Assembly (NCBI RefSeq): GCF_001194135.2
Contig: NC_068994.1
Coordinates: 35,442,520-35,506,519, forward strand
DNA length: 64,000 nucleotides
Direction: 5' to 3'
Origin: Octopus bimaculoides
Taxonomy: Eukaryota
Shown here piece after piece: positions 3,079 through 39,496 of the stretch. The notes beneath the pieces are model-generated. The model searched no databases and was not told where the DNA came from. It was given only the letters and a program-made list of their open reading frames with translations. The stretch's first letter is position 1. Every line of letters begins with the position of its first letter. Both the position numbers and the translations under genes were made by a program.

Positions 3079-3331
3079 CTTGGGTACAGCTGGTAATGGT
3101 TTTGCATAAGAGGTAAAGCTGTTCCTCATTGGTAGATTCCATGGTTGTGATGGACTGGCACTGCTAATTCTTAAGGATTTTAGATCAATAACATCATTAG
3201 ATGGAGCATTCTGAGTCACATTGGGTTGGTAAAAACATCTGGTACTGGTATCTTTAAGGTTTGAGAGTGTCTGTGGTAATATTGCATCGCTGCCTAGGCC
3301 CTTTAATTGTTCAGGCTGACTAGTTTTAACT

Positions 3332-3332
<1 letters not shown>
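3079..3332 (-). CDS. Pcdh: Protocadherin third coding exon (254 nt; ends ...QPWNLPMRNSFTSYAKPLPAVPK)
   Basis: Acceptor ttattcag before 3332; 84 open codons after the phase-1 split Gly; donor AAG|gtgaag at 3079/3078, or read-through to TAA at 3054-3052. No ATG-initiated ORF in this frame reaches 60 aa, so it is absent from the ORF track. The C-terminal motif resembles octopus protocadherin tails (recall). Confidence 0.82.
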
Positions 3333-3377
<45 letters not shown>

Positions 3378-4500
3378 AACAACAACAACAACAACAATAA
3401 TAATAATAATGATAATGATAATAATAATAATAATCAAAATCATAATAATAATAACAATAGTTTCAAATTTTAGCTCAGAGCCAGCAGTTTTGAGTGGAGA
3501 GTAAGTCAATTACATCAAACCTAGTGCTCGAGTGGTACTTATTTTATTGACCCCCCCCCCCATAAAAAAAAAAGATGAATGGTAAAGTTGACCTTGGCAG
3601 AATTGAAGTCAGAATGTAAAGCTTGCTAACAATTCTGCCAGATCACTGCTTTAATAATGATAATATTAACAATAAGTCTTTCCTCTTTGGGCACAAGGCC
3701 TGAAATTTTGTAGAGAGGTGCTAGCCAATTACATCGATCCCTGTACTAAACTGGTACTAACCCCAAAAGTATGAAAGGCAATGTGAACCTCTGTGACATT
3801 TGAATTCAGAATGTCGAGCTGTAAGATAAGCTACTAAGCCTTTTGTCTGATATGGTAATGAGTTTGCCATCTTTTTACTTGCCAGAAGGGTAAGAAATGA
3901 TGGAACATTACAAGTACAAATTGCGAAAAAAAGGAAGATGGTAAAAAAATGTGTAAAACATAAATGACATGAGTATGTTCCAATAGTAATAATAATAATA
4001 ATAATAATAATGGTATTAATTTCATTGAATACAAGGGTAGCAAAGTCACAGTATTACAATACAAGGCAAGAAATAATAATAACTGTAGTAATAATAGTAA
4101 TAAAATGATGATAATAGTAATAAAATGATAATAATAATAATAATAATAATGTTGGTGATGCAAAAGATGATAACAATAACAGTGTAGTAAAAGCGACAAA
4201 CAATAACAATAACAACAGAAAGTACAACAAAAAAGAATAAATACTGCATTAAAAGCAATGACTTGCAAACAGTCATTATCAAACAGAGATAACAAGTTCT
4301 ACATTAATTACTTTTCCACATTTTACTATCATACTGTATGTAAATCTTATCTCCTGAAAACAACCGGATGTTGTTAATGACAAAAAAGTGATGACGATAA
4401 TAGATTGCAATGATGATGATGATGACAAGATGATGATGGCAATGACAGTGAATGACCTCTTTTAAGGCAGCTCAACATTTGGTTGAAATGCATATTTTAA

Positions 4501-4719
4501 CCCTTTAACATGCAGATTTCTTTATCAAATGTAATGCTTATGTATTTACATTATTTTGAATTACTCATGCATTGTCTTAAAGCTTTGAGATTTCAATGAT
4601 GTGCTTCTTAACTTTCGGAATGACATTGTAGGGGAGGTGGAGGAGGCAAGATCTAGCTAGTTTGAACTTAAAATAAGAAGAATATTTGGGCTGGTATGAC
4701 CAGTCTAAATGCTAAAGGA
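4501..4719. mobile_element. piggyBac-like MITE (about 220 bp); other copies at about 27995-28224, 33828-34015 and 45181-45400
   Basis: TTAA on both sides; termini CCCTTTAACAT...ATGCTAAAGGA (AAAGGG|TTAA in the 45.4-kb copy); the four copies share the internal sequence in both orientations. Confidence 0.7.
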
Positions 4720-8652: not shown

Positions 8653-9496
8653 TAAAGGAACATAACTAAATACTGTCAGGAATTTTGTCTGTCATTACTA
8701 CCAATCCTGCCATCCAGAACCCCTAAACTAAATTAATTTTTTTTAACTGAAGCACACAGTCACAAAATTCAGTGTGAAGCAGCAGTTAAAGGCAATTATT
8801 TTAAAGATTGTTACATTCAATAGTAGTAGTAGAACCAATAGAAAAAAAAATTGCAATTAGTATTATATTAATACTGCAGAAGAACTGGTCATTATGAAAA
8901 ATAAGTATAAGACATACAATCTAATAAATGAAAGTATTAAAAAACCTAAATTAAGAGCCAGTGACCCTACAAAAATACATTAAAAAAACCCCCAAAATTC
9001 CCAGCAAAATAACTGAAACAAAGCAGGGAAAATTTAACAAAGCAAGGACAATTTAAGAAAGTGGAAACAATTTAAGCTGGAGTGGGGTAACATCAACAAA
9101 AGCAACACTGCACACACCTGAGGCATATGGAGATGATCCTGGTGATGCAATGAAGAACTCGCATCTATGAATAATAATACAACAATAATGATGACAATAA
9201 CAATAACAACAATGATAATAATACTGATAATGGTAATAATGATAAGAGTGATATTGATAATAGGCATTTTTAAAACATTAAATATAATAATTATAATGAT
9301 AATTTCATTTCTATTCAAGAACTTTACTTTTAAGAAATTCTTTTCTTAATTTGTTTTGGCACTAGGACAATACTTTGTCAATCAATTTGTCAATGACATT
9401 AATCAGTTTGTTACCAGGTCAATTCCTCATCAATATCCAAGTTGTAATGTCTCCAGATTATTTCATTCTGGTATTACTTTAAATACATAAATTTTA

Positions 9497-9683
9497 GAAA
9501 GTTAAAGAAGTGATTTTTAAATTCTCAAACGCAGGATAACGCTAATAATATAGCCTGAACAGGATAAGCTACCCCTATTTTGCAGAAAAAAGTGTTGGTG
9601 GCCAGGGGTAGCTTATCCTGTTCAGGCTATATTATTAGCGTTATCCTGCGTTTGAGAATTAAAAAATCACTTCTTTAACTTTC
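9497..9683. repeat. 80-bp inverted repeat (79/80 identical) with a 27-bp spacer
   Basis: Arms 9497-9576 and 9604-9683, read directly from the sequence. Confidence 0.95.
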
Positions 9684-10544: not shown

Positions 10545-10627
<83 letters not shown>

Positions 10628-16330: not shown

Positions 16331-17309
16331 TGATTATTATTATTATCATTTTTAAGGCTGTGGGCTGGCAGAATCATTAGCATGCTACCAGCTTTTCATC
16401 CACTGCTGGGGGTCAACTTTGCCTGTCATTCTTTTGGGATCAATAAAATAAGTACCAGTCAAATTGAATCAATGTAATTAACTAGCCTCTTCTTCAAAGA
16501 TTTCAGGCCTGTATTAGAAAGGATTATCATTATTATCTACTGTCACTTTTTTTAACCTTTGTATGCTATGCATATATCCCTTCTTTTTCAAGGTATACCG
16601 TGTATACTTAATTCTTTTCTTTTTTACCCTTTTTTTTTACCATTTCATTATATGCAAACCCCTACACTTTGTCTTTGTATTGTCCCCCTCATCCTTCACC
16701 CTTGTGGAAAACAAATGAAATCATTATTATTATTATTATTATTATTATCATTATTATTATTAGTAGTAGTAGTCATTGTTAATAATAATAATAATACTGA
16801 TGATGATGACAATGAGGAAATTAATAAGAGTCAGTGTAATAAAATAGACTACAATAATACCATAATGCTAAGCTTTGTTACTATCAAACTACTGGATTCT
16901 GGTTTGAAATAATATTCCCTCCATTAGGTCTTCTTGATAAGATAAAATGTTTTGCTGAGATGAAAATACAAACATAAAGAAGAAAAAAAAAATCTTGTAT
17001 TCCTTAGATCTTTCAAACATAAGTATTTCACTCTAAAAATATCATACTGTGTGCTGCAATTATTTTAGACTTCCAACATGTTTAGCTGACCTTCACTAAC
17101 CAGGTTTGACTCAACCAGCAAATAATCTACGGGGGAGCTTCTAATTCTGTTTCTCAAATAAAAATGTAGCCTATAGGGATAGAGAATTCCCCTTTTTACT
17201 TCAACCAATTTTAATAGTGCCTTGTTTGTACATAGTTCAAAGATTCCATCAGAGCAAAACCATTTGAATGCATTGCATGCCACAGATAGGTTGTAATCTT
17301 TGAACTTAC

Positions 17310-17460
17310 CAGCTAGTGTTTCATAAAGCCCGTTGTTTCCACCTTCACTGTTAATGCTAGGACCACAGTCATCTGAACGAGATGATATTGTTGAAGATTC
17401 ATTCAGATGTTTTTCTTTTTTACCTGCACCAGATGTCACAGCAGTGTCTTGAAAGCACAT
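17310..17460 (-). CDS. Pcdh: Protocadherin second coding exon (151 nt; cytoplasmic MCFQDTAVTSGAG...SEGGNNGLYETLA)
   Basis: Acceptor tttttttcatag directly precedes 17460; donor CTG|gtaagt at 17310/17309. Phase 0 entry matches the upstream donor and phase 1 exit matches the next exon. Ser-rich SSTISSRSDDCGPSINSEG plus YETL resembles protocadherin tail motifs (recall). Confidence 0.85.
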
Positions 17461-19262
17461 CTATGAAAAAAAATATACAAGATAACGACAATAATCAAAT
17501 GTAGAGAATTAATTAATTTTTTCTCTCTCTTCTAGACACAATGTAGATTTGTGAGGGGAAGTTGGAAAAATCCAATCTACTATTGAATTTTAATGGAATT
17601 TGTCACTGCTTGACTAATAACAAGGTTCTTTACTCTATTAATTTTTTTGAAGCATGATAAAGCTGATTGAGTCAACCAAGTATTGTAAGATGTCCTTAGT
17701 TGAATTTTCAAATATTTTATTACGAGACCCTGTTCACTTTATATCATTCTAGACACAAACTTAAGACTTGCCTGTAGTTTTCACAAGCCATGCACAATAT
17801 CAATAAATAAATTGAGAAACTTTGCGATTAAATGTACATAGCAAAATCATTTCAGGCCTTGCCCTAAAATAACTTTGATGTTGTAACCCCAAGAGCAAGG
17901 CAAGAAATAATTTCATATATAGATATTGTTAATTGGTTCATCTGCTCTGTGGAGTGTTTCATAGCTTGGTGATTAATATTAGCAATGAGCACAAAGGTCA
18001 GTGAGTTCACAGGAAGAATAGATTACTTATGAAATGCCCAACAGCATTTAAACACATTCAGATACATCTTTCCAAGTTCAAAATTTTGCCAGGTTCAACC
18101 TTTGTCTTTCATCCCTCTGGCATTAATAAAATAAATATCAAGTACATTCTGTGACTAGAATTGATTGACTATATCTCTTTTAACTTTATGACAATGTAAG
18201 AAATCTATATTGAAGCAGAGTACAGAGAGCTGTTAGTTGGAAGATATCACAGAACATATGAATAGATATGATAAAGTATTAAATTAAATCTATCATTTTG
18301 AGTTCAAATTCCACTGAGAGTTGACTTTGTATTACATCAGTTCAGACATTGACATATGAAAAGCCAGCAAAATACTGAGGTTAATTTTATCAATTACAAT
18401 AACCTTTTTCTGCATAAAAATATTGATTTGTTTGCCCAAGGGAGAAATTAATATGGTATGGTGAGTAAATTAATCTATTGGTGTTTACATTGCATATGGA
18501 CGCAGGCCTGGTTGAACTTTTAAATGACATAATGTGATGTTTGTATATATTGAAATATATAGATTTAATTGTATTTGTAGCATACACCCGATATGTAGGC
18601 ATACCTTCCTCTAATAAATAGATTTGACTCACACAGACACACAGAGACTCACACATACCTCAAAGACCTAAATTCAGTTATAAAAAATATTTATGCTAAA
18701 CATTATCAGTTACATTTGGACATCTTTTTATAAAATAAATACCATATGTTACAATGAGAACACTTTATTAATAAATCCTCCTCATCATCGTCATCATCAT
18801 CCTCATTTTCATCATCATTGTCATCTTCGTCATCATGGTCACTGTCTTCAATATCACTGATAACTATGATGTCAGCAGCAGCAATGGCATCATCAGCATC
18901 CTCGTCATCATCATCATCACTACTTTATAAGTGAATTTTGTAGACAGACACAATATAAAGTCCATCATATGTGTGTGTGTATGTGTGTCCTTGTATGTGT
19001 GTCTGTATATGTGCCTGTATGTATAAATGCATGATTGTGTTTGCACATATTGTTAATAGTTTACTTGGTGCTGCTGAAATTTCTAGTTGGTACTATGACT
19101 TCTTCCACTACACTTTTAAAAAATACTCTACCTGATAAAGCAGGTAAGGTTTGATCACAGGAGAAGCATCTTGGTTGTAAAAATCCTGCCTCAAAACTCC
19201 TCTCCAATTCATGACAGCATGGAAAAATAGATGCTAAATGAATGACCAAATAAATATTGTCT

Positions 19263-19308
<46 letters not shown>

Positions 19309-19569
19309 CTCTCTATATATATATACTAAAAGGTCTAGTCTATTTTGTGTTGGTATGGTGGGCTGTGTGCCTCAGTGGTCCTGAGAGTTATGTCAGTGGA
19401 GCACAAGCTCCTCCTTGTATAGTATCACATGTTGACCCCATTCTTAGATATTTGTCATATATATATATATATATATATATATTAAGGAATAAAAAAATTA
19501 TTTTAACTTTACAGGCAAAAATCGGTATATTATTACACCGGGTTTCATAATATATAATATATATGTATA

Positions 19570-21621
19570 TTACTAATTTAGAGACGAACCACCACTCTAC
19601 AACTCAGTCAACTCAGAACCCATCCAAATCCATGCTGTGAGGCATATACCATCTTAATATACCTAAGATTTAAATCTAAAAATTTTAATTAAATAATATA
19701 TTACATAAATAAATCATAGAAATATTAATTTTAAAAAATTTAAAAGTTAAAATTATAAATTGGACAGTAAAAATTACCATGATAATATACAGTATTGAAG
19801 TATAGATTTAAAAGTTAGTGCTAGTATATAGACTACGCGCGTTTCATTGCTGGAATAGGACTATATAAAATCATAAGCATATTCTATCAGAGTTCATTAG
19901 AACGGGGAAATACTAAAATAATAACGAAAATATCGAAAAAGAAAAACCTACCTAAAATAAAAAGTTTATTGAAGATTAATAAAATACTAAAATACTTAAA
20001 ACTCACAGATTTACACAGAATAATAACTATACCAAATACGAAAGTTATGTATTACTTAAAAAATGTTATGAAACAGTGTAAAAGACTGCTCATGTTATCG
20101 ATGAATACTTAAGGTAAAGGTAGTTATATGTTCCAATTTGTATAATATTGTGATGATTAAAGTGTATTCTAAAGCTAATTTGTTGTATCTTACGCTACTG
20201 ATCATAACTATAAGTTGGTAACTAATCCTAGGTTTAAATAAATAAGTTAGTTATCTAAACTTATTATATAAGTAATTTAATTTATGTCTGCATTTAATAT
20301 TACGTTCATCGTGGGAGTTATTTTTTATTAGATAATAATATCTCTTTGAATTCGTTAGTACATAATAAGCAGAATTTATTCCCTATCCTATATGATTTAA
20401 CCTTGCAAACTATTTCCCATTTTAACTCGTATCCTATTCTTTTTTATTTAAGTTTCCAAATGGATTTACTAAGGCCCATAGAGTTCATTAAATTTCTATT
20501 CTTAAAAGAATTCATATGTTGCGCCACCCGGGATTTAATTTTATTGCAAGTCGATCCAATGTAGGTAGTATTTTGTGTTATCATTTTCACTACAGTCATG
20601 ATCCTTCAACATCACTATTTTAGTAATTATAATACGTATTTAGCTCTGGTAATGGACACCATGTTTATCACCTGACTTTTCAGTATTAATGTTCATAGCA
20701 TTATTTACGTAATGTAGAATTTTCGTATGTATATAGTTATTACTCTGCGTTAATTTGCAAGTTTAAGTATTTTTCTAATTTTAATCCTCAAGAATCTTTT
20801 TATTTTAGGTAGATTTTATTTTTCGATATTTTCGTTATTATTTTAGAAATTATAATACGCATGTACTTCTGGGTAATAGACGTCATATTTATCACGTGAC
20901 CTTTTAGTATAAATTCTATAACAGCCATTTTGATTCAGTCCACAGTTACTCACCGGCAGGTAAGTCATGTTTTCTTATTTTAATTTTAATTTTATAAACA
21001 GTATTGACATCCATCTTTTAGTAACTTCATACACTAACACGTTTTTTTACTATTATCTACTTATTCCATAATGTTTTAACCTTGTTTACTATAATACTCT
21101 TTTTCAATATTTTTAGATTGTAACTCTTAATAATTATATTAATAACCGTTAATGTAGGGATCAGTTTACAGATTTTGTCTCTTTGTATATATATATTTAT
21201 TTCTCATGTTTATGTTTATTCCTTGAATGATTTTAGGTATTTTCTTAGAGATTTGAGCTGAAGAGTGACTGATTTTGGGAGTAAAATCATTTCCCCGTTC
21301 TAATGAACTCTGATAGAATTTGCTTATGATTTTATATAGTCCTATTTCAGCAATGAAATGCACGGAGTCTATATACTAGCACTAACGGTTTACATCTATA
21401 CTTCTATAGTGTATATTATCGTGGTAATTTTTACTGTCCAATTTATAATTTTAACTTTTAAATTTTTTAAAATTAATATTTCTATGATTTATTTATGTAA
21501 TATATTATTTAATTAAAATTTTTAGATTTAAATCTTAGGTATATTAAGATGGTATATGCCTCACAACATGGATTTGGACGGGTTCTGAGTTGTAGAGTGG
21601 TGGTTCATCTCTAAATTAGTA

Positions 21622-21622
<1 letters not shown>
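19570..21622. mobile_element. About 2.05-kb foldback-type element with about 340-bp terminal inverted repeats, in TA microsatellite
   Basis: 19570-19911 is the reverse complement of 21289-21622; a second arm pair at about 19913-20072 / 20690-20848; no ORF with recognisable homology. Confidence 0.8.
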
Positions 21623-21662
<40 letters not shown>

Positions 21663-21688
21663 TATATATATATATATATATATATAAG

Positions 21689-21723
<35 letters not shown>

Positions 21724-22701: not shown

Positions 22702-24015
22702 TAATTATTATTATTTTCATATACACTCAAAAGATTAGACTGTTGGAGAAGAAAAGAATCCTAACATTGGGCTACAACAAGTAGCCTTAGATGCCAAGAA
22801 CCTTCCTAAGTATCCTAGCTATCCCTAATATCACTGTTTTCTGGAGTTGTACTAAACTGGGTTTTATGCTTATTTCCTCTATCCATTCATTCAGATCTTT
22901 AGGGATAGTTCCCAATGCACCTAGAACTACTGGGATACATTTTACTCGAATTTTCCACAGTCTCTATAATTCAATAGCTAGGTCCTGGTACTTTGCTATT
23001 TCTTCATCATTTGGGACTATAAAGTCAATTATCTGGCACTTTCTATTCTCTTTTTCTACGACTACCAAATCAGGCCTTCTAGCTTCTATTACTCTGTCAG
23101 TCTGACAGAGTAATAGAACTTTCCTTTCAGCAACCATAACCATCTCTCACTACTACTATTTGCTGCAACTATCTTTGAGAATCTACCATGCAACTCCTTC
23201 TCCTACCAGTCAGATAATTTCTGTTCTCTTTTCTAGATTTTAACTTTGTTGAGGGTTCCTATGTCTTGCTGTGACTTTAGCAGCTTTTAATGAACTTTCT
23301 TCACTTGTACCTACTTCGGAGTTTATATCTATTCTAGCTAACTCCATGCAGTCTTTTATTGATATTAACCCTCTTCTGCCTTCCTTTCTAGGTAGGTATA
23401 ATCTTGCTAGTCCTCCATTTATATTGAATTCCTTCCTAGTTCTTTAGTCTAGCTTTGCTAATTCAGTTTTTGTCCAATCTACAAAAGCTGCTGAGTATCT
23501 AAGTAATGATACTCCCCAAGTATTTACAGCCTTCACTAGATTTGGACCATTTAGCTTTGACTTCATTAGTTTCCTCACCCTTCTAATGTACTCCTTCTAA
23601 ATTTTTGTTTTCATTTCTGTTGTTAGTATCTTGTCAGATTCTAATACTCCTAGATACTTATAACTCTCTCCTCCTTTCAATGATTTTAATGTCTGGCCAT
23701 CTGGTAACTGAATGCCTTCATTGTTGACTACCTGTCCCCTTCTCATGACTAATATTGCACACTTATCTATGCCAAATTCCATGCCTATATCTTTGCTAAA
23801 GAGTCTTACTGTCTCTATTAAAAGATCTATCTCTTTTTCATTCTTCCTAAAAAGCTTCAGATCATTCATGTAGAGCAAATGGTTTGTTTTTCCTTACTAT
23901 TTATTAATTGATGCCCTATCTTTGCCTTCCTTAATACTAAACTGAGGGTGATCAAACATAAGACAAATATTAAAAGGGACAGCGAGTCTCCCTGGAAAAT
24001 CCCACTTTTGGCATT
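22702..24015 (-). mobile_element. 5'-truncated R4/Dong-clade non-LTR retrotransposon (RT C-terminal half plus REL endonuclease), degenerate
   Basis: GIFQGDSLS, YMNDLKLF, DIGMEFGIDKCAIL, YKYLGV; then RRPDLVV...IIDFIVP...KYQDLAIEL (restriction-like endonuclease); stop at 22787-22789; (AAT)n tail. Confidence 0.9.
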
Positions 24016-24049
24016 TATTATTATTAACATTGTTGTTATTATCATTATT

Positions 24050-24460
24050 GAGAGAGCAGTGTATGCCATCAAAGTGAGACTGTACAAATATATGAAGCCC
24101 AATATACCCATCAGGACTATCTGTCTGATAAGGGTACACCAGGCACATGCATCACAGCCATATGTGCACAACATGGTGATCTCATATTAAGATAAACAGT
24201 GCATGTCCTTGTGGGTGGGACCCAATTAGAATTATCTTTGGGTTGAGGAGCCCATCCTATTCAAAAGACACCTGAAGAAGGGTTGTTTAAGGATGATGAA
24301 TGAAACAATCATGTTTCCAGGGGTGAATTATTCAAACACCCAAAGAATCTTTCTCAATGCATGGCTATGATGCTCCGTCACTACTCCTGCTCATGATCAG
24401 AGATGCACATATTGTCAGCCACTAAGGGACATGCTCAAGTGGTTAAGGTCAAGCAAATTT
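24050..24460. mobile_element. Unclassified octopus interspersed repeat
   Basis: GC-richer block (gataagggtacaccaggcacatgcatcac...gatcagagatgcacatattgtcagccactaagggacatgctc) recalled as a common octopus repeat; single copy here. Confidence 0.45.
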
Positions 24461-27400
24461 GTGGAATTGAGCAGAATATTTGATATAACAATATTTCTGC
24501 GTCAGCAATTAAGTGCTGAATCTGTCTGAAATGTAATGGAAAGTAGGTCAGTTTCAAAACATTGATGTCCAGGTCACAAAAGCAAAGTTTGAAGGGAATA
24601 GTAGTGATTTCCTTCGATTCTGGATAGAAGCAAATAAAAAATAACACTTACTTATGAAAGACAAAAAAAATAAAAATTTTGTTACACAATGTTAGTTCTC
24701 TGCACCACCAAATGCAGTTCTGTATGTTCTTCTTTCTTTTAACAAGATGTAACCTCAACAGAATTTCTGTTCATGGTTGAGGACATTTCTCTCTTTGTGT
24801 GCCATTAATTCTCCAGAGAAGAGCAGTGGCAGCAGAAGCATTGTTGCTGTCATCGTTATCATCACCACCATTTACTTTTCCATGCTTGCATGAGTTGGAA
24901 CTACTTTCTATAGCCAGATGCCTTCCTGTTCTCAACTCATGCCTGCTTAAAACAAAGGTGATATTTCCCCATAGCTGGACATATTTTGATGGCAGACTGG
25001 AAACAAGGAATTCCACTTGCATGATGACAATGCTCATTTATAATTATTCCATGATGTCAAGAAAAGGAAACGTCAGCATGCACGCATGTGTGCACACACA
25101 CATACACATACACACTACTTCCAATTCAACTCCCAAGCTTTGGTTAGTCTGAAGCTATTGTGGAAGACACTTGTCAAAGATACCACAAATTGTGACTGAA
25201 CTCAAAACCCTGTGGTCAGAAAGGGTATTTCTTAACCATATAGCCATGCCTGTGACTAAAAGCATAAACATTACAATTTCCTATCTTTGAAATACAGGGA
25301 CTTAATCATCTAGTCAAAAAGTATTTTGCACCTTGAAACAATGATTATGAATGATTTCTGACATTGATGTATGATTATAACTTATCCACGAGTGAGTAGA
25401 CCCTGGCTTTAGTTAACCCACAGTTTGACTGAAATCTGCATGTCCCAATGAGGGAACTTATACATAACTACTTGGCCTGCTAGAAATCATACTCACTTAA
25501 ATTATTTCCTACTGTCTTAGAAAAGACACATTGGATAATAGTATCCTAACTTTCCTGCAGATAGGCACAGTTGTAGCTTTGTGGTAAGAAGTATGATTCT
25601 CAACTTATATGGTCCCTGGTTCTGTCCCACTGCATGGAATTACTTCTTTCTTTAATGCACATGGAAGATCTGAAAGAAATACCACTGAGCATATTGTCCA
25701 ATGCACTAACAATTCTGCTAACTTGCATGAACAATTACAAATAATAATAATACTTATTCAATTCCTGTGATCCTGAAATTATGAAAAAGACAAAGTTGGT
25801 AGGAATTGGATGCCAAACTAAATGGGGACAGCACTTTATTAATTCTTACATCCTGCTAAAATTGGTAAGAAAATAATGGCTGCCTTTGTTAAAGGAAGAA
25901 AAAAGAAAAAGATTCATAGTTATTAACAATATGTAATCATAAACTGAAATATATTTTCTCAGAAAAAAAACTATTTACATTGGTATTTTTTCATATTCAT
26001 ACTATTGAGGACGCTGCCCCCTAACCCTCCCAGGAATGAGTGGGTAAAGATGAGATGAGAGATATTCCTACTGTAAATTAAAGGTCTGCTTTCACCTAGT
26101 GTGATTTGATGACTTATTTTTGATACCAGCTAGTTGGAGCTATTTCTCTGCAATTACTTCAATATTGTTCTTGGAAAAGAATGAATAGTGCAACACCTGA
26201 TTTTCTCAGCCTCATATATTGAAGTTTTAGAGGAATTAATCCTAAGAGTGACAGAAAGGATTACGAAAACTCCAGCAATTGGCTCTATTCATCGCAACTG
26301 CATGTGATAAATAAAATATTGATTACTTGGTGAAATACCATTATGACATATACTGATAGTTTTAAAAAGATGTCCCTCAAAGCAAAATCTTTCAACAAAT
26401 TTTCAAAAAGTGAATAAAATAATGAACATTGATTTAAGTATGTTGGTGGGTGACAGAATAAATTATTTGAGACAGACAGTAGAGTGGAATTTAAAAGAAA
26501 ATTTAAAAAGCATGAATGCTATTAGTGAGGAACACATTTATTTAAAAATATGGTAAAAATGAGAGTATATTGCATGGAAATTTTTTATGGTATCCTGAAA
26601 ATTGTCAAGTTATCCCTCAAACCATTTTTGCATTTAATTCTAATAAAAGCTCTGTGATTCTAATCTACTTTTTTATATATGTTTTTTACATCCATGGCTT
26701 CATTTTAATTTTATTTTTTTTTTTGTGTTAAGACCATCCTCATTTAAATATATTCCAACACAGTTCATTATGCCAGCTCAGTTTGGTGTAATCTGTGGCA
26801 ACGAACTTTTGTTGCTTCTAATCCAACCATACCTTCCAGGATCAGAGAAAGAGTGAGATGTACTTTTCTTTAATGGTGTTGGCATTAGTCTCTTCAAAAA
26901 TATGGCAAGTGCATTAAAGCAAGAAGTAATCCCCTTTCTCCACACTCAATTCATGATGCAACTCTCAATTCCAAGTTGAAGTTAATTTATATCTCTTGTA
27001 CTATTGATGGCTCTTGGGTAACATATTAGCATCAGTTCATTTCATTATATTCTTCTATAACATTTTTCTCTCTTTCTGCTGAAGTAAGATATTTATATAT
27101 TATATTGCAAGTAAAAGAAAATGTGGATGCCATGAGTTTCAGCACAGGCAATCCATTGACTCAAATAAAAACACACTGTAAGAAATTTATATTATATCAT
27201 AAGTGGGATAGAATATGAACACTACAAGTCCACGACGCAGGTAGCCCATCAAGGAGAGTGATAACTTAAATAAAAACTGATATAGAGTAAGGGGAATTCA
27301 TTAGTCCTGATGCTACTTCTCTCATGCTGGTGGTACAGTAAAATATGCATAGTCCATGCTGTAAATAGATTAGTGATAAGAAGGGTAGTCAGCTGTAAAA

Positions 27401-27570
27401 CCAAAATGTATCACAATATAAAAGACAGGCAGTATTTTGGTTATTGTTGTTGTTCCTGTATGTGTCAGATTATGAAGAACCACAATATGTAATGAGATGC
27501 TAAGACTTGTCCAACCCATTCCACTGTGGAGTAAAAACACAGAAATAAAACCAAAACATGTCAAATAATC

Positions 27571-27792
27571 TTTTCTTTTCTACTCTAGGCAAAAAGCCTG
27601 AAATTTTTGGAGAGGTGGCCAGACAATTAGATCAACCCCAGTACCCAGTACACAACTGGTACTTAATTTATCGATCCTGAAAGGATGAAAGGCAAAGTCA
27701 AAGGCAGAATTTGAACTCAGAATGTAAAGACAAATGAAATACCACTAAGCATTTCGCTCAGCATGTTAACATTTCTTCCAGCTCACTGCCTT
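27571..27792 (-). mobile_element. SINE family B, reverse-orientation copy
   Basis: Reverse complement of 15902-16116. Other minus copies at about 3470-3650, 3680-3860, 6280-6480, 6520-6710 and 6740-6930. Confidence 0.8.
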
Positions 27793-29844
27793 CAAAACAT
27801 GTAAAATAATGATATTAATGATGATGATGACAATGGCAACAATGACAGCGATGATGATGACAATAATGGCTTCTGCACTGTTTCTTCTTACCAAATTTCA
27901 TACATGAGGTATTGATCAACCTGAGGTTATGGTTAAAGCCACTAACTCAAAATGCCACACATTGATATCCAACCCCAAGAAACCTATGACTATAGTTTTT
28001 TAGCATTTAAACCAGCCATATCTGACTGAAATATTCTTCCTGTTTCATGTTCAAACTGTCCAGATCCAGCCTCTCATACCTACCCTACAATGTCATTCTA
28101 AAAATAAACTATCAGATCATAAGAATTTTGAAGCTACAACACAATGCGTGGTTAATTCATAACAATGTGAATAAATATGCCTTACCTTTGACAGAATAGA
28201 ATAATCTAAATACTAAAAGGCTAAACTATGTGATTCAAGATTCTTAAATTCACATTAAATCTTCTTACCCTATATATCTTTCTTTTTTTATCTTTTTACT
28301 TGTTTCAGTCACTGGATTGCAGCCATGCTGGGATACTGTCTTGAAGCGTTTAGTTGAGCAAATTGAACCCAGAACTTATTTTTCTTTTCAGGTCTTGTAC
28401 TTACACTACCGAACGACTAAGTTACAGGGGGCAAACAAAACAACACAAACATGTAAACATGCAGATATATTTATATATATAATGGGCTTCCACACAGTTT
28501 CCATCTACCAGATTCAGTCACAAGATATTGATTGATCCAGAGTTACAGAAGAAGACACTTGGTCAACATGTCACATGGTGGGACTGAACCTGAAATCATG
28601 TAGTTGCAATCAAGCTTCTTAACTACACAGCTATGCCTTGTAGAAATCTGTATCATTCTACATACAGAAGAAATAATCAGTATTAACCCCCAAAATAAGA
28701 TGGTGAATAGACAGAACTATTAGCAAGCCAGCAAAACGATTAGCAGCATTTCGTCCTTTACATCCTGAGTTCAAATTCTGCCAATGTTGACTTTGCTTTC
28801 ATCATTTTGAAGTCAATAAAATAAAAACCAGCTGAGCACTAGGGTCGATGTAATCGACTTATCTTCTCCCCACCCCCAGACTACTAGCCTTGTGCCCAAA
28901 TTAGAAATCAATATTAATCCCTAAAATGGAGCTGTACTCATAACAAGACAGCTATCTATTTTTGGCACCTTATTCATATTTACTTATCTATTCATCTTTT
29001 ATATTTAACTTGTTACACTCATTGGACTGTAGCTATGCTTAGGCATCACCTTGAAGAGTTTAGCTGAAGAAATTGACACCAGAACTTATTCTATTGGTCT
29101 TTTTTGCCAAACCGCTAGTGTTATGGGAATGTAAACACCAACACCAGTTGTCAAGTGGTGGATGGGAAAAATACAATGAAGTGCACACACACACACACGC
29201 ACGTATGTATGTATATATGTATATATNNNNNNNNNNNNNNNNNNNNNNNNNNNNNNNNNNNNNNNNNNNNNNNNNNNNNNNNNNNNNNNNNNNNNNNNNN
29301 NNNNNNNNNNNNNNNNNNNNNNNNNNNNNNNNNNNNNNNNNNNNNNNNNNNNNNNNNNNNNNNNNNNNNNNNNNNNNNNNNNNNNNNNNNNNNNNNNNNN
29401 NNNNNNNNNNNNNNNNNNNNNNNNNNNNNNNNNNNNNNNNNNNNNNNNNNNNNNNNNNNNNNNNNNNNNNNNNNNNNNNNNNNNNNNNNNNNNNNNNNNN
29501 NNNNNNNNNNNNNNNNNNNNNNNNNNNNNNNNNNNNNNNNNNNNNNNNNNNNNNNNNNNNNNNNNNNNNNNNNNNNNNNNNNNNNNNNNNNNNNNNNNNN
29601 NNNNNNNNNNNNNNNNNNNNNNNNNNNNNNNNNNNNNNNNNNNNNNNNNNNNNNNNNNNNNNNNNNNNNNNNNNNNNNNNNNNNNNNNNNNNNNNNNNNN
29701 NNNNNNNNNNNNNNNNNNNNNNNNNNNNNNNNNNNNNNNNNNNNNNNNNNNNNNNNNNNNNNNNNNNNNNNNNNNNNNNNNNNNNNNNNNNNNNNNNNNN
29801 NNNNNNNNNNNNNNNNNNNNNNNNNNNNNNNNNNNNNNNNNNNN

Positions 29845-29886
<42 letters not shown>

Positions 29887-31149
29887 ACACACATGTTTAT
29901 GTAAATATACATATGTATATACTTGGATATATATATGCATACACATATGTATATGTAGGTAAATATAGATATATGCATACACACACAGATATATATACAC
30001 TCACACACATACATATACATCCTGTCTTTTTTTTTTACTGATATTGTATATTTAGGATTACATAATCTAATGTGTCCTTTCTCTTAAACAGCAGTATAAT
30101 TTAGAGGGAAATTAGTTGCTATTTCTAACAAGGCAAATAACCATCAAATTAAGGGCCCAGTGTTAGCTTGAATAGGTATCAGTAATATATTCAATCAACT
30201 ATAATAATTGCTCTTTAAAAAGTTGAAAGAAAGCCAAAAAAAAAAAAAAGAAAGTATTGGCTTTGTAATAATTGTTTTGAAAGATATCAATTTTATTCCC
30301 TAAAACAATATTTTGTTCCTGACATAGCTTTAAGTGGTGAAACTAAAGTGGTGACAGCAGGTCTTTTAATACAATTTTTATTTCAATTTTCATTCTTCAA
30401 TTTAAAATTTTTTTTCTTCTTTTTTTTTACCATTTCAAATTTAAATCAGTCAAAAAGAAAGACTGAAATGCAAAAAAATGAAAATTTTAAGTAAAAGGAG
30501 AAATAACAAAATGAAACAGTGAAAAAATATATACATTACACAAATTGATTATTATTATTATTATTATTATTATTGTTGTTGTTGTTGTTGTCGTCATTAT
30601 TATTATCATTATTATTAAGGATTTGGTTGTTCAGGACACTGAAGAAAACTGTTAACATTTGGCCTGCTATAAATGGATATTGCTATCTTCCAAATCTCAA
30701 CATTTTTAATGCTTGTGAAAGAAACAAAACAAAGCAATAAATATATAAAGTATAAGATAAAGAAATAAAATTTTTTAGAAAAATAAAAGAATGAAAAAAT
30801 GGAATATGGTGTCAATTTCTTCCCCAAAAAGTGTCGCCACTTTTATGGAAATTGCACACACAACTGAAAAATGAAATCACCTGTCTGCTGCAGCTGTTAA
30901 GAGCGAGCATTTTTTGAAAGATAAAGATAGGAATACATTAGCTGGTAATTATTAAGTGGAGGCAAAATGCAAAACAGTAACACCATGGCACATTGTTGTT
31001 GTTTTTATTTTTATTATTAGCATTATTAATAATAATGATAATAATAATAATAACAGTGATTAGGCCTTAGGGGTCTGTATATGCAATACAGAATGTATTA
31101 TACAAAAACAGTTACAAAGTGGGTGAGGATGTACACATACATATTTTAA

Positions 31150-32200
31150 ATGGGAGGATGGGTGTAGGGAATGTGATACACTATATCAAATCTGGTTAAA
31201 AATGTGGCAAATGAGATGTTTTCACATAAGGGCAGCCTATCCCATATAAAGGGTAAGGAGCTACCACACTTCAGTAGGATTAAGACATCTTTGTGATTCT
31301 GACCATCTCCTGCTCTGATCACCTTCTGTGAACTGACTCCTCCAAATTTATCTGTGAGCATCTTAAAGTTTAGGAAACTGTGAAGTCTCTCGTAACCCCT
31401 GAGAACTGGTTCATTTGTCATATGTAGACTTGCTGTGTTAATTTTACCAACAGCCTCTCAATTTTATGTTTTCTCTGTAAAAATCAACAAAATATTCCAC
31501 ACTTTCTCTTGTGCTGATTCAGCATTTATGTTAGATTTTTGGTGTTGATTCTGACTATCCCCTGCAGTTTTCCGCCACAACAATGTAGTAGAACACTGCT
31601 GCTTGCAGCCTCTGATCACTCCTCTGCTGAAAGAGAAAACTACTTAGCTTTTCAGTGTCCTATCACAGTAGTAGCCCTGGATGCTGATGATACTGAGGAT
31701 GAGGCAGTGTCATTTCCTTCCACTTGAGCTATACTTGGAACTGCAATTAGCAGTGCTTTATAAACGGCAATATCAGCATCCATGGCCTTCATCTCTTAGG
31801 ATTGCTGTTTTTACTGTTGTCTGCTGCTCTTGTTCTTTTTTCTTCTTTAGGACAGAAGACCCTTTACTCTCACACATATAAAAACTGTACCTTTAGCCCA
31901 GCCCCAACAGCCTAATTAACATGTCCTTCACTCAATGGGATGGAGATCCAGGATTATTTTATGGTCTTCTGTGGTCATCAGGACCTGGATTATAATACTG
32001 ACCCCCATCTTACCATATATCATTCTTGGCCACCCCCGTATCATCACCTGACTATATCACAAAGCTAATGACCAGCATGATTCAATGTCATTACCAGGAT
32101 ATCTAGCTGTGACCTTTGTATTTCTTACCCCCAATTAGTCACCAGTTCACACTATCTCCTTGCTTCAGCTCTGATTTGAAAAACTAAGTGTGTACTTCCA
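31150..32200 (-). mobile_element. Highly degenerate Ty3/Gypsy-like gag-protease fragment
   Basis: Frameshifted CCHC-like knuckle (GCWG...KG...YMC) at about 31868-31915, followed by a protease-like T..VLRGY segment. Many stops. Confidence 0.4.
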
Positions 32201-32280
32201 TATACCATGCCCATTGACTAGAGTTCACTCATCAGCCAGAGCTTCCTCTTCTCGTTCAAAAGTATTCTTTCTTTCTTTCT

Positions 32281-32481
32281 TTCTTTTATTTGTTTCAGTC
32301 ATTTGACTGTGGCTATGCTGGAGCACCACCTTTAGTCGACCAAATCGACCCCAGGACTTATTCTTTGTAAGCCTAGTACTTATTCTATTGGTCTCTCTTG
32401 CCAAACCACTAAGTGACGGGGATGTAAACACACCAGCATTGGTTGTCAAGCGATGTTGTGGGGACAAACACAGACACATAA

Positions 32482-32517
<36 letters not shown>

Positions 32518-32664
32518 GGCTTCTTTCAGTTTCCATCTACCAAATCCACTCACAAGGCTTTTGTCGGCCCGAGGCTATAGTAGAAGACATTTTCCCAAGG
32601 TGCCACACAGTGGGACTGAACCCAGAACCATGTGGTTGGTAAGCAAGCTACTTACCATACAGCC
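32281..32664 (-). mobile_element. SINE family A, well-preserved copy
   Basis: Colinear with 5821-6218 over its whole length, with high identity. Confidence 0.9.
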
Positions 32665-35435
32665 TTCCTTTTTAAATATGTCATCTTTCACTTTGCTTTT
32701 ACTGATTAATATTTTGAATAAGGAAGTCTTCCTTGCTCCTTTCTTTTCTCCCTGGAACTAACATCAACAAACAGTTTCTTTTGGTTTGCAATATTTGCAA
32801 AAGATGAGCTACTGTTGTTGTTAGTAATGATTTTGTTAGTATCACGTATGTCTCAGTTTTTGTTTGCAGCTATGCTATTAGTATGTTTCTTTCTGTTTGT
32901 TTGTTTTTTTTTGTCACTTTTTCCATCTATCTTTAAATCCATTTATGTGATTTTTAAAAAACTCTGGAGCATATTCACTGTTTCCATCTTTGTGGTTAGC
33001 TCATCATTCCACTACACCAGAGTGGGGTTCCACAAATAAATAAACCAAAATGGATGTTCACAAAAAGCATGGTTGTGTGGTAAAGATGTTGGTCCCCAAC
33101 TACATAGTTCTGAGTTCAATCTTACTGCATAGCATCTAGAGCATCTTCTACTATAGCCCTACTTACTAACCAAAGCCTTGTGGGCAGATTTGCTTGATGG
33201 AAACTGAAAGAAGCCCGTCGTGTGTGTGTGTGTGAGCATGTATACCTATATATATATATTATATATAGATGTATTTATAGATATATATCAGTATATATAT
33301 ATATATATATAAGTATATGTATTTATCTATATGCTTGTGTTGTGTATATGCTCACCACCACCACTTGGCAACTGCTATTGGTTTGTTTATGTCCCTATTA
33401 CCTAGCAGCTCAACAAAAGAAATCAATAGAATAAGTAATTGACTTCTAAAAACTTCTGCTGTTGAGTTGTTTGACTAAAGCCTTTATAGCATGCCCCAGC
33501 TTGGCTGCAGTTCAAAGACTGAAAGAAGTAAAGGATAAAAAATAGAATAAAGTCTAAGACAATCCTTGGTTTTCTATTTCAGAGTAATGGGAAAGATGCT
33601 GAAATGTTTCAAAGTTCTTTATGGTAAAATAATTTTTTTTCATTTTCCCTCTGGAAGAAAATGTCTTCTAAATAAAACTCTGTGAAACATGACCATTTAC
33701 AGCAAACAACAACAATGAATATGATAATGACAATGTTGATGATTATAATGATGATGATAATTATAATAACAGAAATCATTTTTAACATTTTTGAAATTGA
33801 AAATTACCTGCAACTATCAAATATTAACTCTTAAGCATTCAGATTACTCTGCCAAATGTAATGCAAAGCATATTTATTCAATTTGTTTTTAATCAATCCG
33901 GCATTATCCCAAAGCTTCAAGATTTCAGTGATGTGAATGCTTATTTTTAGAATGACATTATAGGGTATGTGTGAGAAGTTAGATCTGGCCATAAAGTAAA
34001 AGTATAATATGCAGGCCTGATGTAGTTGGTGCAAATGCTGCAGGGTCGAACGTGTGTTTTATTTAGCACACTGGCTGAAGCATCAGTTTGAATATTCATA
34101 CTGCAATTATTCATGATAGACAGGGAAAAATGGGACTCTGCAAGCTGTATATGGTAATTAGTTTAATCATGAGCTCCAATAAAGGTAGTTATACCTTTCC
34201 TTTCTTGTCCGCCATGTCAGGAATTATAATAAAGAAACATTTTCGTAATGTTTCTCATATTCTCATAAAAGAAGGGTAATAAAAGTCCATTCTGATGCAG
34301 GCATAATGGCTAAGTCTCTCTTTTGAGGATACCTTCCTCTCTTCTTCTTAAGACCCTAGAAGGAAACATATGTGCTGCCTTTTTATTCTGCCTATCTATC
34401 CATCCATCCACCCAGTTTTTCTGCCCACTCTGTCTGGGAAGGTTGTGCAGGTAAAGTCCTTAGGTATCTTCTTCAAAGGTCCTACCAGAAGCAAAATATC
34501 ATTGCACTTTACTATTTCCCAAGCATGACCAACTGAAATTGGATATTATCCACCTGTCTCCTTCTTGGTTTAACCTGGGGGTTAATTGTTTTAGGTGCCT
34601 CTATGATTGAGAGCAATAACAGGCACCTTCTCTGCCTCACTCTCAATTCATTGGAACATCCAGGATGTGACAACTGATGTGTGTGCGAGAGAGAGAGAGA
34701 GAGAGAGTTGCTCCAGCATCTTGGCTGGTATTCATTACAGATGGAGCAATATCTAATAAAGCACCTTCCTCAAGAACAACATGCTGCTTTGTCCAAGAAC
34801 TGAGCCCACAAATACCCTAATTATTAGGCCATATGCCTTTGTAAAAAGATGTACCTGATGCTTAAAAATAATGGAAAAAAAAAGAACACAAAGAAAGCAT
34901 TACTGGTTATAACAGAAACTTCAAATAACTTGAATATTCGTTTTGACAAGCAGATGCCAAAACTACATAGTTGCTTCTTTTGTTTTGTTTTTGCTTTATA
35001 TGATTATTATTGTTAAAGTTGTGGGCTGGGAAAACTGTTTGCACACTGGAAAAAATGCTTAGTAGCATTTTGTCTGTCTTTATATTCTGAACTCAGACTT
35101 CACTGAGGTCAACTTTGTCTTTCTTCCTTTTTGGGTTAATAAAATAAGTTCCAGTCTGGGACTGATGTAATCGATTTCCTCCACTCAAAAAAAAACTGCT
35201 GGCCCTGTCTGCACTAAAATTTGAAATCATTATTATTATTATTATTATTATTATTGTGTTTTGTCAGGTTTAATTTGTACAAGCTGCACCCAAATATCAG
35301 TCTGAGTTGTCAATGGAAAACAAATTTTTTTGCATCTAAAGATGCATTCAGGTGACATGCCATGCAATTGAAAAATTAATATTGGTGTGTTATAAAACTT
35401 AAAAAGAAACGAATTCCTTCATAATAATAATAATA

Positions 35436-35468
<33 letters not shown>

Positions 35469-35527
35469 ATTATTATTATTATTATTTATGAAGATTGACA
35501 TAACTCTGCATGAGCATGAAGGCAAAA

Positions 35528-35675
35528 TACACAATAAGAAGAGTACGATACAATTTGTAATAAGTAAAGATTGACTCTGTTTATCGGATTGAACAATATT
35601 TCAACATTCAACATTCACTTCAATAAGCTGATTCAGTCTCTTTTACAAATTGTATCATATTCTTCTTATTGTGTA
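35528..35675. repeat. 33-bp inverted repeat just inside intron 1
   Basis: 35528-35560 and 35643-35675 are reverse complements with 2 mismatches. Confidence 0.9.
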
Positions 35676-35738
35676 AGGATAATAATAAATATGATTATTA
35701 TTATTATTATTTTTAAGAATGTCTTTAAAGATAAATAC

Positions 35739-38156
35739 CTGATAAGTTCCTTGACCTATGTCTGGATGTTGTTGCTGCTGCTGCTGCTGCTGTTGATGCC
35801 GTAAAGATGAACTTTTCCAGGTATTATCTGAATGAGGGTCCCTCCTTAAGACAGTTGCAGGGTGAATTCCTGGATGTGTCACCATTATGACTTGTCCGTC
35901 ATTTTGTGGTGTCATTTGTTGACACATATATTCAGACTCTCCTCTATCACCTATAAATTTACTGCTTTGGTCTATTCCATCGGTATATAGAATATCTCTG
36001 TTATGATTTCTTCTTACAATGCATACAGTCACTGAAACTACAATGGCAACAGAAACTATCACAGCTGCTACTACTATAATAATCATCAAGTTAATATGTA
36101 TTCTATTATCTGACTCTGTGTCTTCAGAGATGTACATTCTGGCTGTTGTATTGCTAACAGTTAGTGTCAAGAAGAGTGTAGTTGTTGCTGATAGAACTGG
36201 AGTACCACTGTCTTTGACAGCTAATTCTAAATTATATGGTCCAGCATCATTTTGGTAAACTGTCCGAGAGAAAGATAAAACTCCTGTATAAGGGTTAACC
36301 TTAAATAATTGTTTGTCATTACCTCCATGTATTTCATACCTAAGGAAGGAATTAACATGACTGTCTCTATCAGAGGCTCTTAATGTTGTGATGTCACTCT
36401 TACTCTGTGGATGGTAATGGACATCTAGATTGAATGGGTTAACACTGGGAAACGTAAAATACGGTGCATTGTCATTTTTATCCATAACTTCAACAACAAC
36501 AACTGCTGTACTGTTGAGTGAAGGTATACCATTGTCTTTGACTAAAACTTTGAAATTAAAAACTTCTTGCTGTTCCCTGTCCAGTGGCTGAGTTGTTGAA
36601 ATGAATCCAAAGTCAGATATTTCAAATGGAAGAAGGAGACCTTTGCTGTGACCAATCAAAGAGTAAGTCAACTGACCTCCAAGCCCTAAATCAGGGTCTG
36701 TTGCATTAATATAGCCCACAGGGAAATTGGGTTCTTCATTTTCATAAGTAAGAAATTTGAATGTATCTTTGGTGAAATGTGGTTGTACATCATTGACATC
36801 AAGCACTTGAATTGAGAACTCTCTAACAGTTTTCAAAGGTGGTGATCCATGATCCTCACAAGTAACAACCAAATCAACATGGTTGCTCTTCTCTTTGTCA
36901 ATTTGTTTCATTACAACCACTTTGTACTTCTTTAGACCCAAACTCTTGAGCTGAAATCTATTATTATTGAGGTCGCAGCTAACATTTCCATTTTCTCCAA
37001 TGTCATTATCTGTGATTTTCATGAAAGCAATAAAGCTGCCTATTTTAACACCTTCAGAAATTGCGACTTTGTTTTCAGCTGATTTTGAAATAAAGTTCAA
37101 GTCAATAACTGGAGCATTATTTTGGTTGTTGTTTATATAAACCAACACCACTGCTGTTGAACTCGAAGGTGGATTTCCACCATCGGTAGCTTTCACGAAT
37201 AGCTTAAACATATTTTTAGAACCTGATGTGGTGTCTTTTTTTATATAAATATCGCCTGTTTCTTTGTCCAGTCTAAAGAAAGTTCTTGCTAAAGCTGATG
37301 TTTTGGAACTGAACAAATATGAGATTTTTCCATTGTCACCTGAATCAAGATCAGTAGCTGACAAAGTAATAATTGGTCTAGACTTATCAAAACCATTATT
37401 AACAGAAACATTATAGAGATTTTGACTAAATACTGGTAAGTTATCATTGACATCTGTAATTGCAATATTAATTTCTAAAAATCCTTGTTTTGTAGGAAAT
37501 CCTTCATCTCTGGCAATAATTTGTTCCTTGTAATGTTCATTTGTTTCCCGATTTAACTTCTCTTGTAAAATTAACTCCAGACTATCTGTGCCATCAACCT
37601 TCTTAGAAACAGATAAGATAAATGGATCATTTAGATTTTTTTTTAAGTGGTAAGATATTTTTGAATTTAAAACACCTACATCTTTGTCAATGGCATTAGG
37701 AATAAACTTTGCTGTTCCTTTCCCATCAGTTTCAGAGAATTGTAAATTGATTTGTTTCTCAGGAAACTCAGGTTGATTGTCATTAACATCTTCTATGATT
37801 ATTTTTATTTCAAGAATTTTTACAAAGGACTCTTTATTACGGACTGCAACATCCACCATCTGGAAGCACTCTGTGTTATATTTACAGAGTGCTTCAGCAT
37901 CCAATGTTTTGGTTGTGTAAAGTTTCCCAGACTCTGATACATTGAACCGTTGTGAACTAGTTGTTGCATCTTGCTGGAGTGTGCTAAACCAAATAAGATT
38001 CTTCTCCTGGAATGGTACAATACCCAGGGTTTGTGTATCTACTGCAATGTTTCCAACAAATGTTCCAGGGATCTGATCTTCTTCTATATGATAAATATGG
38101 TCAATGCCAAATGATCTATCCACAAGCGACAGGAACAACCATACAACCACCAGCAT
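35739..38156 (-). CDS. Pcdh: Protocadherin (cephalopod-type), large coding exon: signal peptide, 6 cadherin EC repeats, TM helix, proximal cytoplasmic tail (806 codons)
   Basis: 833-aa ORF. Hydrophobic N-terminus; EC1 CX5C motif (C-KYNTE-C); linkers EDVNDNQPEF, TDVNDNLPVF, LDVNDVQPHF, MDKNDNAPYF; DXD motifs (DKDVG, DLDSG, DPDLG, DRDSH); LDRE/LNRE; TM about 36016-36099. Donor CAG|gtattt at 35739/35738 (phase 0); the last 27 aa of the ORF run into a TAA microsatellite (intron). Acceptor tttttttcag at 38201-38210 gives a 44-nt 5'UTR. Family-level symbol only; paralog not identifiable. Confidence 0.97.
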
Positions 38157-39496
38157 TTTTCTCTTTTCAAATTACTGTTAGGTAAGCTGATACAGAAACT
38201 CTGAAAAAAAATTAAAAATAAAAGATTACAAACTGAATAAAAACTGTCACAATTTTTAGAATGACTACAACAACAACAAAAATATTCCATTTCAAATTCA
38301 GATTTCTTATCCCACTAAATATGAAGAAATGATTACTTCTCTTATAATAGATGTAACCATTAGGGAAATCACAAGTGTCTACCAAAAATATTTCTTAAAA
38401 ATAAGAGGACCAGTGTACTTTGAATAAAGGCTTTTGCAATATTAATATTTTGCACTGAGTTACTGAGACACCCTTATTACTCATACCACATAATAAATAC
38501 AATGAATCATTGACTAGTTCATTTGATATATGTGACCAAGAGTGCTAGTTCACTGATTGCTATATAAAATATTAATAAGAATATAGTCTTCTGCTGGGTT
38601 ACCTCTTAACTAACTATAGCTTACAATGGAAAATAGGTTAAAGTTACAGTTACAATTTGGTTCGAAAGTGTTATTGATGGTTAGTCTCAGGTCAACCATG
38701 ACAGCAGCCAGTGCAGTTATAAAAGGCCATTCTAAACATGACAATACTCAATTTCACCTGAACTAAGGTACCTTGGATAACATTATCCAATGTTTCCTAG
38801 TATAAGATGGTAGAGGAGGTGTAGTTTGAGGGAAATTCAGCAAATGATTTCTAGCAAATTGCATGACCACCAAGGCAACTCCTCACTGGCTTTAATGTGA
38901 CTCCCTCATAGACTGGAGAGGTCCAGCTGGTGGGTATTGATGTGTACTGCACCAATCTACTTGTTTTATCTCCATGACTATGGGGAACTACTTCCAATAA
39001 AATTTTGTGTCTGGTTCCACTAATTATAATCTTTTTCTTTCTATTTTGTATGTAATGTTGTGAAAGAAACAAAGAATGGATGAAAAAGACTCTATTTAAA
39101 AGCTAAAATTATATTTAGCTTCGCACACACACACAAACGCACACAGACATACACAAATAATGAACAAACGTAAATAAGTAAAGAAAGAAAAATAAGAAAG
39201 AAAAGTAGAAGAGAAATAAACAAAGAAGAAAAATAAGTGAAAAAAGAATGAGAGAGAGAGAGTGAGAGAAGGAAGGATTGCTTCTTGAAAAGTAGAGAAT
39301 AACTGCTTCTTGTTATAAGGCAAGAAGAGTTTTGGAAATGTTGTTGCTGATACAGTTTCTTTAATGATAGTGTCACAGACTGAGAATCACAAACAGCAAA
39401 AAGAACAAAAAAAGCCCAAAACTTTGAACAAAGAGCAAATTGGCTTTGGTCACGTAACAGTTTTATAGAGATACACACACAAACATACACACACAG

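Follow-up and report, generated by a model that had tools for sequence, protein, structure and literature searches.

Does the 833-amino-acid open reading frame (ORF) on the minus strand of a 64,000-nt stretch of Octopus bimaculoides DNA (the window) encode a complete protein, or is it only the first coding exon of a far longer protocadherin gene? And if the gene is split, do the small exons encoding its cytoplasmic tail belong to it, or are they constant exons shared with other ectodomain exons? According to our analysis the locus is, with high confidence, an ordinary member of the octopod protocadherin expansion whose tail exons are its own. Neither the gene nor its exon structure is new: public databases have carried both since the 2015 genome. 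All coordinates of the gene model refer to the minus strand of the window, and a slash in a splice-site sequence marks the exon boundary.

The ORF list places the 833-amino-acid frame at 38156..35655. Reading of the sequence shows a donor (CAG/gtattt) directly 3' of 35739, and the distance from the ATG to this donor is 2418 nt, hence phase 0. The ectodomain-transmembrane exon (35739..38200) has a candidate acceptor, tttttttcag/A, at 38201/38200, and its coding sequence (CDS) of 806 codons (38156-35739) encodes a signal peptide, six cadherin repeats, a transmembrane helix and about 90 amino acids of juxtamembrane cytoplasmic sequence. This 806-amino-acid product is identical to the N-terminus of two database proteins (P0127 and P0133). 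Intron 1 (17461..35738) has a nominal length of 18,278 nt, including an assembly gap, and is collinear with intron 1 of O. sinensis. Coding exon 2 (17310..17460; 151 nt) starts at ttttcatag/ATG and ends in phase 1 at GCTG/gtaagt, encoding MCFQDTAV...GLYETLA(G). After an intron 2 of 13,977 nt, coding exon 3 (3079..3332; 254 nt) runs from attcag/GA to AAG/gtgaag in phase 0 and bears the conserved tail motif NDVIDLKS...WNLPMRNSFTSYAKPLPAVPK. Spliced together, the three exons give exactly 941 codons up to 3079. If exon 3 is instead read past this donor through 3052..3078 (VKFVFKLS, the end of an older model), the stop at 3054-3052 gives 949 amino acids. The beginning of intron 3 occupies 1..3078 and the intron continues beyond the window edge.

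These junctions (35739, 17460, 17310 and 3332) had been proposed, with both intron lengths and a product of about 941 amino acids, by an initial annotation made from the letters alone. All four are present at those coordinates and phases on the minus strand, the lengths match the junction coordinates and the product has the predicted size. The database comparison carries this further. Where it overlaps a longer locus of O. bimaculoides CM046614.1 (GCA_001194135.2), here numbered L001, the window shows 100% identity over 48 kb, N-gaps included; window position x corresponds to L001 48157-x. The 949-amino-acid product is, residue for residue, UniProt A0A0L8FRT3 of O. bimaculoides. The first 941 residues are those of RefSeq XP_052829017.1 ("protocadherin beta-3 isoform X2", 945 amino acids), which then adds IKSQ; the proposal that the 833-amino-acid ORF is only part of a multi-exon gene was thus correct. 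We found no difference in sequence or exon junctions from the annotated gene (A0A0L8FRT3 / XP_052829017.1), and the 941-amino-acid model is the portion of the annotated RefSeq CDS that falls within the window. Contrary to what had been supposed, the structure is not hidden: UniProt and RefSeq already offer the same model for O. bimaculoides, O. sinensis and O. vulgaris. The gene was rightly described as multi-exonic across the window, but the extent of more than 35 kb given for it falls short of the RefSeq coding range of about 93 kb (L001 10001-102956), whose fourth coding exon lies outside the window. Unaided reading of raw sequence therefore recovered the correct three-exon model across 18-kb and 14-kb introns, without going beyond what was publicly annotated.

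The same tail is present in annotated orthologues from O. sinensis (XP_036365111.1; 97% identity), O. vulgaris (CAI9732394.1) and Argonauta hians (a 970-amino-acid protein with 84% identity and 100% coverage). By tblastn, the order of exons 1 to 3 is preserved in O. sinensis and within a compact Argonauta gene of 12.9 kb, exon 2 being matched in both species. In three-species alignments, DNA similarity to Argonauta hians has sharp limits: it sets in precisely at the acceptors of exons 2 and 3 and breaks off precisely at the 3079 donor, where Argonauta has AAG/gtaagc, a donor used after exon 3 by its own gene model. Because of the database identity, and because the boundaries of conservation fall on splice sites, the exon structure goes beyond what chance would produce.

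The same comparisons bear on another reading of the ORF, in which exons 2 and 3 come from a separate transcript and the protocadherin ends in or just after the 833-amino-acid frame. In-frame read-through of the 35739 donor does yield this ORF, and the databases hold tail-only predictions of 80-217 amino acids. We nevertheless consider this reading very improbable: in four species, as in many paralogues, full-length protocadherins end in homologous tails, and all Argonauta exons follow one another in the same order within the 12.9 kb. Furthermore, the 217-amino-acid model of an Argonauta paralogue (P0006) joins juxtamembrane-like, exon-2-like and exon-3-like sequence in one protein, and the 27 codons that follow the 35739 donor are of low complexity (VFIFKDILKNNNNNNHIYYYPYTIRRI).

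The spliced product has the features of a protocadherin. Pfam searches assigned five stretches to PF00028 (Cadherin; E = 2e-66) and residues 22-105 to PF08266 (Cadherin_2), giving six extracellular cadherin (EC) repeats, and five DxNDN-type inter-repeat motifs are visible in the protein sequence. A hydrophobic stretch (INLMIIIVVAAVIVSVAIVVSVTVCIV) after EC6 fits a single-pass membrane protein. No Pfam family was detected at E <= 0.001 after residue ~650, cytoplasmic tail included. According to Wu and Maniatis (2000; cited in PMC7339444), encoding of the whole ectodomain by one large exon is a protocadherin hallmark, and here the uninterrupted 2418-nt CDS exon at 38156-35739 carries the whole ectodomain. 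By the features tested (at least six repeats, a single membrane pass without the classical catenin-binding domain, a one-exon ectodomain), the protein is a protocadherin. Its membership of the octopod expansion is given by its identity to an annotated O. bimaculoides protocadherin, its place in a chromosomal array and its own tail exons. From the RefSeq models and what is known of the family, the protein would function in homophilic adhesion.

Whether exons 2 and 3 serve this gene only can be judged from its relatives. Protocadherin paralogues occur on the chromosome and strand of the window gene at 32.6, 34.3 and 35.4 Mb. Among eight O. bimaculoides paralogues, the counterparts of exons 2-3 share only 28-51% identity with each other; there is therefore no common constant domain, which would be identical. 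Two paralogues (P0014 and P0053), located on this chromosome and strand, each carry a separate exon 2, exon 3 and terminal exon 3' of their respective ectodomain exons, with the four-coding-exon layout of the window gene. Both strands of the window, with the 25.8 kb that precede the ectodomain exon, gave no further cadherin or tail coding sequence. The published descriptions agree: according to Albertin et al. (2022; PMC9068888), cephalopods do not splice several first exons onto common final exons, 168 multi-exonic PCDH genes stand in head-to-tail arrangement (as cited by Styfhals et al., 2019; PMC6339937), and the literature describes full gene duplication. As the initial annotation had suspected, exons 2 and 3 are private.

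A constant-exon system, which the initial annotation had left open, would have exons 2 and 3 also used by ectodomain exons beyond the window, as in vertebrate Pcdh-alpha and Pcdh-gamma. A big ectodomain exon with small cytoplasmic exons does look like variable and constant exons, and the genes do lie head to tail on one chromosome. Such a system is nonetheless extremely improbable here, given the divergence of the paralogue tails, their position in their own loci, the absence of further cadherin coding upstream in the window and the account of cephalopod genes in PMC9068888. In addition, the next ectodomain exon lies downstream, not upstream, of these tail exons. Diversity of the family comes from whole-gene duplication, and not from many ectodomain exons placed on constant exons.

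The tail itself has few relatives. An exhaustive phmmer search with its 135 amino acids matched only 14 proteins among 1.84 billion representatives, mostly short tail-only fragments; the tail therefore looks lineage-restricted. A word-index search with the tail alone returned six short matches and missed the full-length orthologues, which a full-length query recovered. Some of the phmmer matches are named as octopod in that word-index search, the phmmer library itself carrying no taxon names.

Intron 1 contains an assembly gap of 618 N (29227..29844) with TA/TG/CT microsatellites on both sides. The gap lies wholly inside this intron and therefore has no effect on the reading frame; the chromosome-level assembly has not closed it. 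The orthologous O. sinensis locus (L002) has no N runs, and the flanks of the gap are collinear with it, window positions 29958 and 29216 corresponding to L002 20299 and 21260. The 961 nt of O. sinensis that span the equivalent of the gap consist of microsatellite and a repeat resembling a short interspersed nuclear element, with no cadherin similarity. No cadherin-like coding was found in intron 1 of the O. bimaculoides gene, nor by tblastn in any O. sinensis intron of the orthologous gene. This agrees with the earlier statement that the readable part of intron 1 holds no second ectodomain exon.

Several other features of the window were observed. Five further N gaps are present in the window (90-242, 1081-1180, 54880-54889, 56371-57124 and 59143-59701), at least three of them edged by TA/TG/CA microsatellites; the first two fall in intron 3 and remain in the chromosome-level assembly. 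Interspersed repeats at 24024-24452 and 50971-51366 are 77-81% identical to L001 110641-111057 and 50489-50881, and short repeat families near 6066-6178 and 32517-32609 have several copies in the Argonauta locus as well.

We then considered the C-terminus, at which the database models differ. In the 945-amino-acid form, the 3079 donor is joined to a terminal coding exon (ttttcag/ATAAAATCTCAATAA, encoding IKSQ and a stop) at L001 102942-102956, which puts it outside the window, about 54.8 kb beyond its start and about 57.9 kb from 3079. A six-frame search did not find IKSQ followed by a stop on the minus strand of the readable window; a plus-strand match at 8950-8964 was dismissed as chance. 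On the same strand, about 58 kb 3' of exon 3, is the ectodomain ORF of the next protocadherin. The IKSQ exon forms the leader of that gene's ectodomain exon (L001 102942-102982; L002 104497-104538 in O. sinensis) and uses its acceptor, the ATG of the next protocadherin following the IKSQ stop by 23-24 nt in both Octopus species. The Argonauta fourth exon (KEFYLKKNGNNVLSS and a stop) has no counterpart in the Octopus loci.

This coincidence with a neighbouring gene is one of the arguments that the true C-terminus is the unspliced 949-amino-acid end, with its stop at 3052, and that the 3079 donor and IKSQ exon are an artefact of read-through into the next gene. The 949-amino-acid form is also that of the original genome annotation, AATAAA signals lie 400-650 nt downstream, and in one paralogue (P0003, from a Logan contig, with an intron-like upstream part) PKLPYA and a stop are contiguous with its exon 3. 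On the other side stand the exact stop of Argonauta similarity at the AAG/GT boundary and the donor that Argonauta retains and uses there. O. bimaculoides and O. sinensis differ in the amino acid at three of the eight read-through codons, compared with an overall identity of 97%, and in the DNA alignment the extension at 3052..3078 shows no similarity to Argonauta. In P0014 and P0053, too, the same PK is followed by a splice to a small stand-alone terminal exon. Because the read-through changes within Octopus and fails to align with Argonauta, the spliced end is more likely than the 949-amino-acid end, and from sequence comparison 3052..3078 is probably intronic. We regard the unspliced end as rather unlikely.

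Several points weigh against our reading of the locus as a whole. The database models disagree at the C-terminus (949 amino acids by read-through, 945 when spliced), and the 945-amino-acid model could itself be a read-through or conjoined artefact, its terminal exon being the leader of the next gene. The use of the junctions in RNA is inferred from the RefSeq models and conservation. The first exon and promoter of the gene were not located.

Concerning the 5' end, a strong polypyrimidine-plus-CAG acceptor precedes the ATG by 3-83 nt in each of the four distinct Octopus ectodomain exons examined, and two O. sinensis orthologues show one as well. The sites are at 38201-38225 (minus strand) in the window, at L001 102915-102941, at L004 ~2895-2917 and at L005 ~2975-2997. 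In the window gene the candidate acceptor is 44 nt upstream of the ATG, and an equivalent is not visible in Argonauta. Octopus and Argonauta share no alignable sequence 5' of the ATG. Among the ectodomain-exon acceptors examined, only that of the next gene is used in a database model. Because of the strong candidate acceptor upstream of its ATG, the ectodomain exon is probably internal. Octopus ectodomain exons would then probably be preceded by 5' untranslated exons and not be promoter-proximal first exons.

The layout had been likened to that of vertebrate clustered protocadherins, a comparison that stands in part. The Pcdh-alpha and Pcdh-gamma genes (variable exons plus three constant exons; PMC7811963) have the same large exon encoding signal peptide, six EC repeats, transmembrane helix and a juxtamembrane piece. 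Small downstream exons for the distal tail and tandem head-to-tail arrays are likewise common to both systems. What does not carry over is the sharing of constant exons: the vertebrate genes share a constant domain, whereas the octopus tail exons are private and have diverged to 28-51% identity. Moreover, the vertebrate variable exon is a promoter-proximal first exon, whereas the octopus ectodomain exon has an apparent acceptor upstream of its ATG, and the octopus tail has no detectable relatives beyond the few octopod-type matches. The vertebrate and cephalopod expansions have been described as independent and convergent (PMC9068888).

The layout resembles that of the non-clustered delta-protocadherins at least as much as that of the clustered ones. 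Vertebrate delta-protocadherins (Pcdh1, 7, 8, 11X and others; PMC7339444) are also stand-alone genes with a large ectodomain exon and few private cytoplasmic exons, and they too produce long and short tails by alternative splicing. The difference is that the short octopus isoforms arise by a frameshift into a second frame of exon 3. The motifs CM1-CM3 were not found in octopus protocadherins (PMC6339937); Pfam and the tail phmmer search gave no evidence of delta-type CM1, CM2 or CM3 in the cytoplasmic part of the window protein, no motif-level search having been made.

The short tails are seen in two RefSeq isoforms, X5 (815 amino acids) and X3 (881 amino acids), both ending in ELKLVSLNN. In X5, exon 1 is joined straight to exon 3 in phase 0 and exon 2 is skipped. 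In X3 (P0131), a 47-nt cassette exon at 9118..9164 on the minus strand (tcatag/AT...CAG/gtgtgtg), encoding (D)ASSSLHHQDHLHMPQ, shifts exon 3 into the ELKLVSLNN frame. The length of the cassette and both of its splice sites are kept in Argonauta (L003 ~18884-18930). Exon-3 bases 3332-3303 (minus) are consequently dual-frame, read as GVKTSQPEQLK in the long isoform and as ELKLVSLNN followed by a stop in the short ones (P0128, P0131). In these first 30 nt of exon 3, all three Octopus-Argonauta substitutions are synonymous in the ELKLVSLNN frame and non-synonymous in the long-tail frame, which hints at selection on the short C-terminus, with weak statistics as only three sites are involved.

Other details of these exons are noted in passing. 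The polypyrimidine tracts of the exon-3 and cassette acceptors (3333-3450 and 9165-9230, minus) are long (ATT)n/(GTT)n microsatellites, and Argonauta has a CT-rich tract at the corresponding position before exon 3. The end of exon 2 (17310-17330, minus) encodes LYETLAG, and most paralogues read YEE[IL]P at the equivalent position, which we take to resemble a pYEEI-type SH2 ligand. The consensus of WIRS-type motifs is hydrophobic-x-T/S-F-x-x; RNSFTSY was rejected as such a motif, having arginine at the hydrophobic position.

Directly 3' of the exon-2 donor lies a conserved intronic block (17225..17309, minus strand) that is about 86% identical to Argonauta (L003 17250-17330) over ~80 nt by blastn, about the same as exon 2. 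Other intron sequence aligns with Argonauta by blastn at dispersed repeats only. The block contains a conserved GCAUG and a 12-bp stem (AGUUCAAAGAUU/AAUCUUUGAACU) that begins at intron position +5. The predicted fold of the 85-nt hairpin alone stands out (z = -2.3 in Octopus and -2.9 in Argonauta), whereas a 256-nt fold of whole exon 2 with its flank was no better than shuffles (z = -0.99). The consensus fold shows no compensatory changes, both arms being nearly invariant. In-frame translation of the block yields a peptide (GKFKDYNLSVACNAFKWFCSDGIFEL) that is conserved, with one indel of 3 nt. The block could act as a structure regulating the splice site, offer a platform for binding or extend the coding sequence in an alternative form.

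Taken as a whole, the gene is transcribed from the minus strand. Its one big exon encodes the protein from the signal peptide through the six cadherin repeats and the membrane helix into the cytoplasmic domain. The rest of the apparently lineage-restricted tail is encoded by two small exons, the first 18.3 kb downstream and the second another 14.0 kb on, and the conserved donor at 3079 would lead to a very short terminal coding exon beyond the window. Alternative splicing would alter the tail alone: exon 2 with exon 3 would give the long tail with its WNLPMRNSFTSYAKPLP motif, and skipping of exon 2 or inclusion of the 47-nt cassette would reframe exon 3 and give the short tails ending in ELKLVSLNN.

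That the choice of tail is actively regulated, through the frameshifting cassette and through the hairpin, which would sequester the region just 3' of the exon-2 donor, and that 3079 is spliced into the leader of the next protocadherin, are two proposals that we hold to be quite unlikely. Neither is described in the literature consulted. If the second is true, conjoined transcripts from 3079 to the leader would couple the expression of neighbouring protocadherins, unlike the promoter choice of vertebrates. The dual-coding start of exon 3, the hairpin at the splice site and the shared terminal exon bear on how octopus neurons vary the signalling tails of their protocadherins.

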